DNA of 64,000 nt from assembly GCA_025594325.1 (NCBI GenBank), contig JANHCV010000007.1:1364001-1428000 (forward strand). Direction: 5' to 3'. Below are positions 9,938 through 64,000 of this stretch, in pieces. Under the pieces are notes generated by a model, which saw only the letters and a program-made list of their open reading frames with translations, was not told the origin of the DNA and did not search any database. Each line of letters starts with the position of its first letter. The first letter of the stretch is position 1. Position numbers and translations under genes: made by a program. This DNA comes from Blastocladiella emersonii ATCC 22665. Lineage: Eukaryota; Fungi; Blastocladiomycota.

Positions 9938-12082
9938 ATGAACCGCTCCAGCAGCGCCCTCCTGCCGCCCTTTGCACGAGCAATGCGCAGATTCCGCACC
10001 CAGCACGCCGTCCTACTCGCCGTGACCGCCCTCGTCGTCGTGACCGTCGCGCTTGCCGCCCTGGCGCTTCACGACCGTCCAGGCGGTCGTCACGGCCGCA
10101 TCTTCGCGGACCGCCTCGGCAAGCGTGACGCTGGCGGCAACACCGCCGTTGCCGACTTTCTCGCGCGTCTCGACGCCGGTCTCACGCCGCTGACGAACAA
10201 GTCGCGCGAGGCCACCTGGAACTACGACACCAACCTAACCAACGCCAACCTTGCGTACGTGTTCCTTGGTCTCTATCGGGTTCCGCGCTCGCACAAACTA
10301 ACGCATGGAGAATCACCCGTAGCAAGTCGACCAAGGCCGGTCTCGAGCTCAACGCCGCCATGCAGGGCTTCTACAACGAGTCCAAGCAGCTCAACACGAG
10401 TGGCGCGTCGCCCGCGCAGCGCCGCCAGCTCGACCGGCTCCAGGCCGGCTTCTCGGCGATGCTCTCGGACCCGGCCGAGCAGGCCGAGCTCGCCAACTTG
10501 ATCGGGAAGATGAAGGGCATTTACAGCTCCGGTGCGCTTCCTACTCTGCACATCCTCGCAGCCGTGTGAGCTGACCGTAACACTGCGCTTAGCCACGTAC
10601 AAGGGCCTCCCGCTCGAGCCCGACCTGACCGAGCTGCTCGCCACGTCGCGCGACTACGCCGAGCTCGCCGACGCGTACATGGGGTGGCGCAACGCGACGG
10701 GCCCGCGGATGCGCGGCGACTACCCGCGGTACATGGCGCTGTCCAACAAGGCCGCGCAGCAGGGCGGGTACCGCGACCTGAGCGAGCAGTGGCTCAGCCG
10801 CTACGACATGCCGGCGGACGCGATGGAGGCCCTCGTCGAGACCCTGTGGGCGCAGGTGCTCCCGCTGTACCGCGAGCTGCACTGCCACGTGCGCGGTCGG
10901 CTCGCGGGCTTCTACGGCGCGCAGTACTTCAGCGACGACGACAACCTGATCCCGGCGCACCTCCTCGGCGACATGTGGAGCCAGTGGTGGAGCAACATCG
11001 CCGACCTCGTGGCCCCGTTCCCCGACGCGCCCGCGGCGGTCAACCTGACGGCCGCTCTCCGCGCGCAGGGGTACTCGGCCGAGCGCATGCACCGCCTCAG
11101 CGACGACTTTTTCGTGGATCTCGGGCTCGAGCGGCTGCCCGCGACCTTCTGGAACCGCAGCATGCTGACCAAGCCGACCGACGGCCGCGACGTCGTGTGC
11201 AACGCCGCGGCGCGCAGCATCGACATGGACCGCGACGTGCGGATCAAAATGTGCACGGACGTGACGGGCGAGGACTTTGCGACGGTCCATCACGAGCAAG
11301 GGCATCTCCAGTACAACCTCGCGTACCGCGCGCAGCCGTACCTGTTCCGCGAGGGCGCCGCCGACTTTTTCCACGAGGCCGTCGGCGACACGGTCGCGCT
11401 GTCGGTCCTGGTCCCCAAGCACCTCGCCGAGATCGGGCTCGCCGACGGCGGCGGCGGCGGTGGCGGCAACGGCACCTCGGACGCGGTGCGCGAGCAGCAG
11501 TCGCTCAACGCGCTCATGAACACGGCGCTCGACAAGATCGCGTTCCTGCCGTTCGGCTACCTCGTCGACCGGTGGCGCTGGCTCGTGGCGCGCGGCACCA
11601 TCACGCCCGCCAACTACACGGCCGCGTGGTGGGACCTCGTGCAGACGGTGCAGGGCATGAAGCCGCCGGTCCCGCGCGACTCCGCCTCCTCGGCCGACGC
11701 CGAGGGCGCGTTCGATCCGGGCGCCAAGTACCACGTCGCGGCCGGGGTGCCGTACCTGCGGTACATGCTCAGCACGATCCTTGAGTTCCAGTTCCACCGC
11801 GCGCTGTGCCGCGCCGCCGGGTACGCCGGCCCGCTGCACGAGTGTACCGTGGCAGGGTCCAAGGCCGCCGGCGCGCAGTTCCGCGCGATGCTCGCCCTCG
11901 GCGCGTCAAAGCCGTGGCCCGACGCGCTCGCTGCGGCCACGGGCGGGGCTGAGCGCGACCTCGACGTGGCGGCGCTCGTCGAGTACTTTCGCCCGCTCCT
12001 TGACTGGCTCAAGGCGCAGAACGCCGGCAAGTCGTGCGCGTGGACGCCCGGGTCCGAGGAGCTCGCGCGGTCGCGACTGTAA
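9938..12082 (+). CDS. ACE: Peptidase M2 (angiotensin-converting enzyme-like peptidyl-dipeptidase), single domain with N-terminal hydrophobic anchor/signal; introns 10255-10322 and 10532-10592
   Basis: HHEQGH (HEXXH) plus FHEAVGD, PAHLLGDMWSQ, RIKMCT and FDPGAKYHV. Both introns restore the frame. Confidence 0.92.
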
Positions 12083-59928: not shown

Positions 59929-60278
59929 GGTGTAGTGTTGATACGTTGCGAGGGGGGCAGCGGAGGGGGAGCGAGAGCTGCGGGCGGGGAGCGCGGGCCA
60001 CTTGTACGCTGCGAGGACGGCGACGGCGAGGACGAGCACGGCGACCGAGAAGAACAGGCGCGAAGAACGAGCCATTGCGCGCAAGGCAAGAGAGCCGATC
60101 ACCCGCACCTCGCAACTGGCCGGTTTCGCGCGGCCGGAACACAAAACGTGACGCGGCGCAGCGCCCGTTTTCGCGTGCGCGCTGCGTTGGGGCGGGGTTG
60201 GCCGGGATCCGTGGCGCCGCCGCATCTCGGCCCTGCCAGCGAAATGAAAAGGAGGAGAAAAGAGCGAGAAAAAGAGAG

Positions 60279-60350
60279 TGAGGCGTGAGTGAGTCGAACA
60301 CCCAACCTTTTGATCTGGAGTCAAACGCGCTACCACTGCGCCAACGTCCC
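60279..60350 (-). tRNA. tRNA-Trp: tRNA-Trp (anticodon CCA), intronless
   Basis: GGGACGT-TG-GCGCAGTGGTAGCGC-G-TTTGA-CTCCAGA-TCAAA-AGGTT-GGGTG-TTCGACT-CACTC-ACGCCTC-A folds as a cloverleaf. It is followed by a TTTTT Pol III terminator. One A4:C69 mismatch. Confidence 0.93.
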
Positions 60351-60785: not shown

Positions 60786-63700
60786 ATGGCCCCGCCCGGC
60801 GCGCTTGCGACCCTGCTGCGCTTTGCCAAACGCCGGCCTTCCTCGTCGTCGTCCAAGTCTGCTATGCCTGACGCGCCGCCGTCGCCCGCCCTCAAAGAGT
60901 CTTCCCGCGAGCTCGCGCTGCCCCGATCCCTCGACGACGACGCCATGCCGCCCACCAGCAACTCCATCCCCGAGATCACGGTGACCGAATCCGCGGCGCT
61001 CCCGCCCGTGCCCGTGCCCGTGCCCGAAGCCACCCCGCCGCCGCAGCCAGACATCGCGCGTGCCGCCGAGGACCTGGTCGCGCCGGCCGCGCGGCGAGCG
61101 TCGCACACCGAGTCGATGCTTCGCGCGGCCGGCGGGATCGCGACCAAGGCCGTGGACCTGCAGGAGAAGGCCATGGCCATGAGCGAGTACCTGGGCATGG
61201 CCGAGGTCGTGTCCGGGTTTCTGGGGGATCTCGCGCAGACGGTGCCGTTTGGCGCGACCATCGCCAAGTGCTTCTCGATCATGTACCAGGCCGAGCTCGT
61301 TGCGCAGGACAACGAGGACAAGGCGACCACGCTGTTCAAGCGCGTCACCTTCGTCCTCGACACGGTGCGCAACCTGTACCAGATCGGCAAGTGGAACGTC
61401 GACAGCGCGCAGAGCGTGCTCGGCACCATCGAGCTGTCGGTCGTGGAGTGCGCAAAGTACTTTCACAAGTTCCGCGCCAAGTCGGCTTTCCAGCGCGTAC
61501 GCTCTCTCTCCTTTCTCAAACTGCTCCCCTGTACTGACTCGTGCGACGCGTGTGTAGCGCTTCTACTCGACCAAGATCCGCGAGCGGTTCGCGGGCCTCG
61601 ACGCGGGCCTGAGCGCGGCGCTCGCGCAGCTGCAGCTGGTCCTGCAGGTCGAGACGGTGCTGCGGCTCGAGCCGACGCCGACCTTCACCAAGCCGTCGCC
61701 CGAGGACGCCAAGGCCGAGAAGTTCATCGAGTCGCACGGCGGCGCCGACGCCTTCAGGGACAACCCGGACCTGGTCGAGCAGCTGGCCAAGGCGATCGGC
61801 GTCGAGTACTCGGCGACGCTCGTGGGCGAGGTCGGGCAGCGGTTCGACGCGGTCGAGGCGTCGCTCGAGGCCGGGTTCCTGGCCGCGATGCAGGCGCTCG
61901 AGGTGCAGGGCCAGGTGCTTGACAACATCCACCACAACGTGTCCGGGCTCGCGCAGCGCGGCGCCGCGTACGAGGACCTGTACAACGAGGTTATCCGCGG
62001 GATCTGGCAGCGGTGCGGGTGGGGCGCGACGGTCCCGCTCGTCAACTTCATCGAGGTGATCGTCGCCGAGACCAAGGACGGGTACGGCGTCTGGGCCGAG
62101 GAGCACGGGTTCGATATCGAGTACTACGTCCTCGAGGGGTTCCGCAAGCACCTCAAGCGGCTCGACGCTGACCAGTCGGGCCTCGTCACGGTGCGCGAGG
62201 TCAACGACTTTTTCTTCTTCGACTTTTCGCTCATCCAGTGGGCGCTCGTCGGGACGTTTTACATGCGCCAGCTCGAGATCGATCTGTACGGCTTCGCACA
62301 ACTTCTCCCACCACTCGAGCATCCTGCTGACACACTCTCGGACGCGAACGTGTGTAGCCTCCACGAGGTGGCCGTGCTGTGCCGTCAGGTCCGCGACCAC
62401 ATCCGCGCGCTGCCCGACGACGCGGCGTTTGTGGTGCTGTTCAAGGCGGTCGAGCCCGAGCTGCTGACGCTGGCGCACCTGTGCGAGCGGTCGACCGAGG
62501 ACGAGCTCGCGGACATCACGCCCGAGACGCACGCCGCCATCATGGAGTACATCCGCGCTGACATGTTTGAGGCGACGCGCACGGGGCTGTACGACGGCCA
62601 GCCCGACCTGTACGACTTTCACGTGCAGCAGCTCATCGCCGTGCAGTCGCCCGGCGTGCACCGCCACTTCTCGGCGTCCATCAAGTCGGAGCTGTCCGCG
62701 CTGCTCGAGTACATGAGCGAGCTGCGGGCCGCCGACCGCGCCGGCGAGGACGAGCACGCACCCATGCTCTCCGCGCTCACGTCGTGCCTGTACGAGATCG
62801 CGCGCACCTTCGAGCGCGCGTTCCCCGACACGATCCTGCAGCTCGACGCCAAGGCCAAGCAGGCGGCGATCCAGTACGGGTACCTCGCGACGCGCGGGTC
62901 GACCGACTGGTCCGCGCTGTTCGACTTCCCGCCCACGACGTTGCAGGAGCCCTTCCCGCTCACCGCGTGGGTGCCCAGCGCGCTGTCGCCCGACGTCCCC
63001 GAAAACGCGGTCGTCGGCGGCACGCTGTTCGGCGCCCCCGTGTACCTCGTCCAGGCGCTCGTCAACGTCGCCGGACGCACCAACCTCGTGCCCTCGTTCG
63101 CGTACCGTTCGCCGACCGGCCACTGGAAGTGCAAGGCGGCGATCGCGGGGGTCCAGCACGCCGCCACGTTCCAGTGGCTCACGCGTGCACGCAACGTGCA
63201 CGTCGCCTCGACCGTGAACGAGCCCGCCGACCACATCCTCGCGTGGGTCCCACTGCGGCTCGACGGCGACGCGCCGCACCCGCTGGCCGGGCGCGCCGGG
63301 ATCGAGTACCGCAAGCACGAGACGTATTTCGCGCGGCTCCGCGTCGATCCGGCGACCGTGGTCCCGGGCAAGCTCTTCACCAAGAATGGCCAGATGCACG
63401 CGTCGTTTGTCCTGCCGCGCGCCGACGGCGACGGCGCCTACGAGTACACGACGCTGCCGCACCAGTCCAAGAGCAGCCTCCGCCGCCCGCTGTCGCGCGA
63501 CATCGCCATAGAGATCCTCATTGCCGACTCGCGCAACATCGCCTTCTACCAGCACCTGCAGTGGAACACGCTCGCCGAGGCGCGCGCCCGCAACGCACAG
63601 CCCGTGATCGCCGGCGGGACGTCCGACCAGCCCGCGTACCTCGCGTGGACCGTCGGCGACCACGGGATGCGCCTCGGCATGGTGTTCGCCGACGAGGACT

Positions 63701-64000
63701 ACGCGCTGCTCGGCGAGGACCCGTTCGGCGGGGGACGCGACGACGATAACCGCGACGACGACGGGCTCGCGACACCGCACTTCCGCGTCCTTACGGGCCT
63801 ACCGGGCGCCGTGTTCGAGTCGGGACCGTACCGCCCGCACCCGCACCTCGCGTGGAAGAAGACCACGGCCGAGGGGATCGTCCACGGCGCGCACTCGGCC
63901 ATGAAGATCGTGATCGTCAACCAGACGCTCCGCGGCGAGACACTCGCGGTCGCGCGCACGGTGTCGACCAAGGCACTCGCGGACAAGCCTCGTACGTTTT
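60786..64000 (+). CDS. Multidomain protein: MLKL-like four-helix N-terminal domain + EF-hand + DM9-like repeats (introns 61497-61557, 62286-62357; runs off the window)
   Basis: Both splice junctions are in frame and the frame stays open to the window edge. AQTVPFGATIAK..AQDNEDKATTLFKRV helix bundle; DADQSGLVTVRE loop; WVPSALSPDVPENAVVGG..VYLV and VVPGKL repeats. Confidence 0.75.

Follow-up and report, generated by a model that had tools for sequence, protein, structure and literature searches.

The window analysed here, a 64,000-nucleotide stretch of the genome of the fungus Blastocladiella emersonii ATCC 22665 (contig C19:1364001-1428000 of the 32.7-Mb genome), ends within a forward-strand gene, H9P43_006415, which NCBI lists as a 'hypothetical protein' of 1059 amino acids (P0001) and which is the locus matched by our protein searches. 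Its product begins with a disordered region, followed by an MLKL_N four-helix bundle and its brace, a pair of EF-hands, a helical linker, two tandem DM9-fold domains (the second probable) and a short tail. The identity of these three domain types, the structure of the gene and the collinear conservation of the whole within the Blastocladiomycota were each established in this analysis. An earlier sequence-only reading of the same DNA had proposed that an MLKL-like bundle, an EF-hand and DM9-like repeats are joined in one protein, and had supposed such an architecture to be undescribed; the combination is supported by independent tests, and our literature search turned up no paper that describes it. 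The inputs to the searches reported below were the individual exons, the unspliced open frame or the database protein P0001, to whose 1059 residues all residue numbers refer.

The coding sequence is divided among four exons. Exon 1 (60786-61496) covers the Ser/Pro-rich, disordered N-terminus and reaches halfway through the MLKL_N bundle; intron 1 (61497-61557; 61 nucleotides (nt), GTACGC...TGTAG) separates it from exon 2 (61558-62285), in which the bundle is completed and followed by a helical linker and then by the EF-hands. Intron 2 (62286-62357; 72 nt, in frame and stop-free) leads to exon 3 (62358-63991), which encodes the helical linker and the DM9-fold domains, and intron 3 (63992-64051; 60 nt, of which only 63992-64000 lies inside the window) leads to exon 4 (64052-64314). 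This last exon and the stop codon TAG (64315-64317) were recovered beyond the window, whose end the gene overshoots by 317 bases. All three introns begin GTACG and finish [CT]AG, with junctions identical to those of the NCBI model, and their positions are common to the paralogs, in which their lengths are not multiples of three (97 and 67 nt for intron 1, 65 and 71 nt for intron 2, 70 and 80 nt for intron 3). Introns 2 and 3 must therefore be spliced, given the paralog lengths at the same positions. In the window copy both are multiples of three and stop-free, and the reading frame runs through them uninterrupted for 919 codons; retention would thus add 24 or 20 residues and would not truncate the protein.

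With four exons, an intact frame and canonical introns, the spliced open reading frame of more than 1000 amino acids described from the sequence holds. The NCBI model starts at an internal ATG (60945), but translation probably begins upstream of this, at the ATG at 60786, which gives 1112 amino acids, because the first 20 residues read from it align with the start of the paralog P0002. The helical block quoted in the sequence-only reading is present; the peptide given there as the N-terminus, however, starts at an internal Met, and ~130 disordered Ser/Pro-rich residues precede the bundle. Judged by its sequence, H9P43_006415 is one intact four-exon gene with a single predicted protein of ~1112 amino acids.

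Domains along the protein

The MLKL_N-type four-helix bundle and first brace helix occupy 61167-61680 on the forward strand (P0001 ~75-225) and span intron 1, which explains why Pfam searches with the exons singly gave no MLKL_N match. Against the Pfam model MLKL_N (PF22215; gathering cut-off 27 bits), P0001 scored 26.0 bits (E 7e-6), P0002 29.2 bits and P0003 30.1 bits, and the N-terminal homologs mostly scored 27-41 bits, most of them above the cut-off; one of these, P0032, carries an NB-ARC fusion. A profile built from 28 family N-termini (A3) found mouse MLKL in the PDB (4btf) with E 7.1e-15 (58 bits, MLKL residues 17-141), MLKL structures as a group at E 7e-15 to 1e-11, and the entries for the human MLKL N-terminal domain (NTD) at ~1e-12, followed only by designed helical bundles, none of them better than E 0.002. 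A phmmer search of the PDB with P0001 itself returned nothing useful.

The AlphaFold2 (AF2) model of the N-terminal part (31-sequence alignment, predicted local distance difference test (pLDDT) 77) has the long helices expected of an MLKL-like four-helix bundle, at P0001 56-97, 103-147, 152-178 and 188-220. Structural alignment of the bundle with VIA-align gave Z 8.0 to the MLKL NTD 2msv (root-mean-square deviation (rmsd) 2.6, 96 residues aligned) and Z 10.2 to the CC domain of Sr35. Foldseek found no significant match for the whole 396-residue helical N-terminal model, and a wide VIA-align search returned only generic helical bundles at Z 8-11. Because such Z values are unspecific for helical bundles, the case for MLKL_N homology is carried by sequence; on those grounds homology of the N-terminal bundle to MLKL_N is well supported, in agreement with the earlier proposal.

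An EF-hand pair follows at 61966-62220 on the forward strand (P0001 ~321-405). Its first loop is non-canonical, with a conserved W..GWG..V, and its second is the canonical 12-residue Ca2+-binding loop DADQSGLVTVRE (62164-62199; P0001 387-398), found exactly where the sequence-only reading had put it. The PROSITE pattern PS00018 matches DADQSGLVTVREV at P0001 387-399 (62164-62202), the loop proper ending at residue 398 (62199), and also matches the homologous column in P0002, P0003, P0006, P0033 and P0036. Homologs at 20-38% identity, including one chytrid and two basidiomycetes, retain D-x-D-x-[ST]-G-x-hydrophobic-[ST]-x-x-E, then [VL]-N-x-F, and positions D1, D3 and E12 of the loop are invariant or nearly so in the family alignment (A4). 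A profile made from that alignment gave only EF-hand proteins as its top matches in the PDB (E 1.2e-6 to 1e-4). The AF2 model places the pair at pLDDT 92-98 as helix 274-283, strand 288-290 and helix 291-313, then helix 318-332, strand 339-341 and helix 342-348 (model numbering), the two short strands being paired. By VIA-align the pair matches the EF-hand of Cbl-b (Z 8.6, rmsd 2.2, 83 aligned) and the EF-hands of DGK-alpha (Z 7.2), with calmodulin at 5.4-5.7 and calmodulin, hippocalcin and CBL2 together spanning Z 4-5.7. None of the Pfam EF-hand models rose above its cut-off in P0001 (the best, EF-hand_STIM1, at E 0.22-0.24 and 12 bits), and EF-hand_1/5/6 matched a few homologs weakly, at best with E 0.001. 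The conserved canonical loop predicts that the pair binds Ca2+.

The W-initiated repeats noted in the sequence from ~62968 onward are present, and fall into two domains. DM9-fold domain I, containing two DM9-like repeats, lies at 62962-63531 on the forward strand (P0001 629-818), and a second, more divergent domain with repeats 3-4 probably occupies 63532-63991 on the same strand (P0001 819 to ~975), continuing into exon 4. Modelled with AF2 from a 12-sequence alignment, residues 600-1059 are all-beta (predicted template modelling score 0.71); the model is confident over 629-880 and weaker after ~880, with a pLDDT of 64-91, mostly 73-91, in domain I. The only Foldseek matches in the PDB at probability 0.99-1.00 were MFP2/MFP2b and CGL1/CgDM9CP-1, the latter at probability 1.00 with a template modelling (TM) score of 0.68-0.74 depending on the target. 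VIA-align superposed residues 629-818 on CGL1 at Z 15.2-15.6 (rmsd 2.4-2.6 Å, 139-141 of 142-143 residues) and on MFP2 at Z 11.7-11.8, the next unrelated match reaching Z 2.9. In the ESM Atlas the top three structural neighbours all belong to clusters of the DM9 family PF11901. Language-model features also point to DM9, at 0.85, which we use as a lead only.

By these models P0001 629-818 is of the DM9-type fold. For a probable second, divergent DM9-like domain at 819 to ~975 the indications are that one Atlas neighbour, a four-repeat DM9 protein, aligns across both halves (model residues 20-353); that the Foldseek alignments to the two-domain MFP2 cover 381-410 columns; and that hhalign places domains I and II in register, weakly, at E 0.01 with twelve sequences and without significance with three. 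The DM9-like repeats of the sequence-only reading are thus borne out as a fold and not as a family match in sequence: Pfam DM9 matched none of the exons, single repeats or repeat pairs at E up to 10 and none of the relatives, the C-terminal profile A1 found no DM9 protein in the PDB, and a word-based search with a DM9-I profile (A5) gave no match at E 0.1. A six-frame search of the genome for DM9 was also empty, yet the control genomes gave none either, so that result is uninformative.

Pfam found no other domain in P0001, whether spliced or exon by exon, and no nucleoside triphosphatase (NTPase) domain of the NB-ARC or NACHT type in P0001-P0003, in keeping with the description of the protein as 'NOD-less'. 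No signal peptide or transmembrane segment was found in P0001, the sole hydropathy window above 1.6 falling within the beta domain; P0001 is therefore predicted to be cytosolic. Between the EF-hands and domain I lies a helical linker of unassigned fold (62359-62913 on the forward strand; P0001 428-612), the most divergent structured part among the paralogs; residues 428-615 gave no usable match in the protein atlas, and the N-terminal AF2 model reached only the first 23 linker residues (428-450). In P0003 the linker (~540-620; the region of C19:1857468-1857640) holds a long Glu/Asp-rich low-complexity insert with spurious weak Pfam matches (BUD22, Nop14 and others). Just before the first bundle helix stands an RRAS motif (61092-61103 on the forward strand), conserved only in the three close paralogs, which we take to be a protein kinase A-type consensus. 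Development in B. emersonii is regulated by cyclic AMP and protein kinase A, and control of the bundle by phosphorylation at this motif is conceivable.

As for the neighbourhood of the gene, a tRNA-Trp (CCA) lies at 60278-60350 on the reverse strand, ~435 bases upstream of the gene start, with a divergently oriented fumarylacetoacetase-like open reading frame beyond it. The downstream neighbour, on the reverse strand from 360 bases past the window end (L001 2460-3601), resembles a multi-intron membrane protein.

Paralogs, homologs and distribution

The B. emersonii genome contains three close paralogs: the window gene, one copy from C19:1855879 onward and one at C15:276600-279788. Identity among them is 82-86% in the MLKL_N bundle and 84% in DM9-I, and falls to 41-60% in the linker and 47-49% in the C-terminal tail. 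A distant paralog, H9P43_004861 (P0046), is collinear with P0001 over residues 48-960 at 25% identity and then continues into ankyrin repeats, and proteins of 1930 amino acids in Sorochytrium (P0020) show the same domain order, likewise with ankyrin repeats. Two tandem, collinear, full-length homologs lie on Catenaria anguillulae MCFL01000002.1 (L020 4234-7525 and 8548-11700). The first of these is unannotated save for a C-terminal fragment of 182 amino acids (ORZ40743.1), and the second is apparently split, its N-terminal part being the 676-residue ORZ40742.1 while a downstream 194-residue call at 11404-12082 overlaps the C-terminal match.

When 1.84 billion representative proteins were searched exhaustively with HMMER, only 34 relatives turned up. 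Those sharing the N-terminal part belong to the Blastocladiomycota, the chytrids, the Mortierellomycota and, in a few cases, the basidiomycetes; the DM9-like module, and with it the collinear architecture, was not found outside the Blastocladiomycota among these proteins. With the unspliced in-frame reading as query, a word-based search matched the three B. emersonii paralogs and nothing else; with exon 3 alone it gave no match, the full-length relatives lying outside its length window.

Several partial or rearranged members accompany the family. Tandem and dispersed copies of the EF-hand and linker only (P0001 317-609) occur at C18:863520-868364 and C18:911163-914672 (L008, L009, L010, L015 and L016), and from their sequences, several of which have in-frame stops, these look like decaying or truncated family members. 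In P0018 and P0022, of Mortierellomycota type, MLKL_N is fused behind an AhpC/TSA peroxiredoxin domain. P0031, labelled as a '1-cys peroxiredoxin' of Salix suchowensis, has MLKL_N at 474-574 and no AhpC-TSA match at E 0.001; this willow record may be a fungal contaminant.

Possible functions of the protein

Our tentative preference, held at somewhat less than even odds, is for a regulated membrane-targeting or membrane-permeabilising effector of the MLKL/HeLo-like/RPW8/CC-NLR kind, those systems (reviewed in PMC12881547) being the basis of the analogy. The N-terminal bundle would be the executioner, and the C-terminal DM9-fold module would take the place held by the pseudokinase in MLKL or by the NOD-plus-repeat part in NLRs. 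On binding a ligand, which is likelier to be a protein or small molecule than mannose, the DM9-fold module would release the bundle, in a switch rendered Ca2+-dependent by the EF-hand. That the protein damages membranes, is gated by Ca2+, senses a ligand or has any immune or cell-death role is in each case something that we infer from analogy with these systems.

Several observations weigh against such an effector. The MLKL_N score of P0001 falls 1 bit below the Pfam cut-off, and the structural match of the bundle is non-discriminating, with unrelated helical bundles reaching Z ~13 by chance. The DM9 region is among the best conserved parts in the paralogs (75-84%) and is not the most variable part, as would be usual for a pathogen sensor. 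By motif register the canonical sugar-binding residues are missing. In the C18 subgroup, finally, the EF loop is degenerate (e.g. ILGD--GVVTVDA), and some of the copies have stop codons.

A different use of the same parts would be in Ca2+ signalling or ion flux, with the bundle and EF-hand acting at the membrane, under Ca2+ control, as a channel or as the regulator of one, in the way suggested for plant MCA proteins; it would serve zoospore or germling physiology, development being Ca2+-controlled. The MLKL_N and EF-hand core is conserved beyond the DM9 part, in the chytrid and basidiomycete homologs P0027, P0033 and P0036, which suggests that bundle and EF-hand are the ancestral functional unit, and cation-channel formation has been reported for MLKL itself (review PMC12881547). 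We nevertheless consider a channel role unlikely: P0001 has no transmembrane segment and neither PLAC8 nor any other MCA-type domain, and the putative link to MCA is a matter of general background.

The DM9-fold domains might instead bind proteins, as in MFP2, within a cytosolic scaffold or adaptor whose helical N-terminus would have an interaction or regulatory role and no lytic activity. This would fit the position of MFP2/MFP2b as top Foldseek matches by E-value (4e-5 to 1e-4), at Z 11.7-11.8, as well as the fusion of the DM9-like module to ankyrin repeats in relatives and the lack of conservation of the sugar-binding residues. However, the sequence homology of the N-terminus is specifically to MLKL (E 7e-15), and the homolog P0032 has its MLKL_N domain joined to NB-ARC, where an executioner domain is usually placed; we regard a scaffold without lytic activity as improbable.

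It seems to us very unlikely, for all the closeness of the folds (Z 15.6, 139 of 142 residues), that the C-terminal module is a genuine lectin for recognising mannose or other glycan patterns, as CgDM9CP-1/CGL1 is, fused to an effector. Asp22, Lys43 and Glu59, together with the residues that correspond to them in repeat 2, hold the mannose bound by CGL1/CgDM9CP-1 (PMC4932603; PMC5712788), and either D22A or K43A abolishes mannose binding in CgDM9CP-1 (PMC5712788; PMC4932603); the primers in PMC5712788 place D22 in RAGYD and K43 in TPGK. Repeat 1 of P0001 reads NAVVGGTL and LVPSF, which makes the equivalents of Asp22 and Lys43 Leu and Phe when aligned by motif register, as opposed to a residue-level structural alignment. 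The PGK of repeat 2 is kept, and speaks for a lectin, only in the three close paralogs; other members have PGY, PGV, PGT or PGS, with the lysine replaced. The glycan sensing put forward in the sequence-only reading is therefore unsupported, since binding residues are replaced, the protein has no signal peptide and is predicted cytosolic, and the module is fused to ankyrin repeats in relatives; Pfam DM9 matches are absent as well. A protein or some other ligand for the DM9-fold module is at least as likely.

Least credible of all is an artefact of annotation or reading, in which separate neighbouring genes or a decaying pseudogene were taken for one open reading frame: some related C18 loci do have stop codons and the Catenaria annotators split the homologs, but here the frame is intact across four exons with canonical introns, the same collinear order recurs in the three close paralogs, at least one distant paralog and two other genera, and the structured domains are 65-86% identical between paralogs.

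Returning to the regulated membrane effector, a more far-reaching version of it, which we regard as doubtful, is that early-diverging fungi have, in this family, a new kind of sensor-executioner built as a single chain and without an NTPase, with a divergent DM9-fold sensor, an EF-hand Ca2+ gate and an MLKL-type membrane-breaking output. MLKL-type four-helix bundles are a killing module common to animal necroptosis, RPW8/CC-NLR immunity in plants and the HeLo-like systems of fungi. In H9P43_006415 such a bundle is joined to a predicted Ca2+-binding EF-hand and a lectin-shaped DM9 domain, and not to a kinase-like or NTPase switch; P0001 is a compact system in which activation of an MLKL-like domain by Ca2+ or a ligand could be put to the test. 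If the sensor-executioner proposal were true, lectin-fold sensors would have been coupled to MLKL-like executioners earlier than, or independently of, their control by kinases or NLRs; the importance would be less if the bundle were a plain interaction domain. In one survey of early-diverging fungi, Glomeromycotina were the only group reported to have MLKL-family homologs (PMC8778642), and the MLKL_N homolog described here, in Blastocladiomycota, lies outside that group. The C-terminal repeats of P0001, for their part, define a divergent DM9-fold branch that Pfam misses.

Comparison with known systems

Four identities were rejected: that of a secreted lectin for want of a signal peptide, that of an NLR for want of an NTPase domain, that of a natterin-type toxin because Pfam found no aerolysin domain, and that of an MCA homolog because neither a PLAC8 domain nor a transmembrane segment is present.

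With MLKL (PF22215) and its relatives HeLo/HeLo-like, RPW8 and CC-NLR, P0001 has in common the N-terminal bundle and brace, with profile homology at E 7e-15 to mouse MLKL, and as in MLKL the bundle stands at the N-terminus of a long multidomain protein. Unlike the MLKL-type systems, P0001 has no pseudokinase, NB-ARC/NACHT or amyloid motif, and has the EF-hand pair and DM9-fold domains instead; ~130 disordered residues come before its bundle, which is not so in MLKL, and a lytic function in P0001 would be by analogy. Plant MCA1/MCA2 also join an MLKL-like helical N-terminal region to an EF-hand-like region. The MCA channels, however, have PLAC8 and an N-terminal transmembrane segment, neither of which is present in P0001.

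Among DM9-type proteins, MFP2/MFP2b of Ascaris sperm motility (PDB 2bjq, 2bjr) is the best Foldseek match by E-value (4e-5 to 1e-4) and likewise has two tandem DM9-type domains and is cytosolic, but is without the helical N-terminal half of P0001. MFP2 acts on the MSP cytoskeleton, which to our knowledge is not known in fungi. CGL1/CgDM9CP-1 of Crassostrea gigas (PDB 5id8, 5idb, 5mh2, 5mh3) has the same two-repeat, pseudo-symmetric beta fold at 16-18% identity and has the motifs W..., P.NAV.GG, Y..A and PG in common with P0001. CGL1 stands alone at 143 amino acids, whereas the module of P0001 is tandem, predicted cytosolic and set at the C-terminus of a 1112-residue protein, and by motif register has lost the equivalents of Asp22 and Lys43 in repeat 1. 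Natterin-like proteins, in which DM9 or another lectin module is combined with one that damages membranes, are designed along similar lines (PMC4932603), but their killing module is a beta-pore-forming aerolysin domain where P0001 has the alpha-helical MLKL_N bundle at its N-terminus.

The ankyrin-bearing paralogs in the same genome (H9P43_004861 and H9P43_004808/004809) and Sorochytrium P0020 have the same collinear order of MLKL_N, EF-hand, linker and DM9-like module as the window gene; these relatives end in an ankyrin array, in whose place the window gene and the two paralogs close to it have only a short tail of variable sequence.

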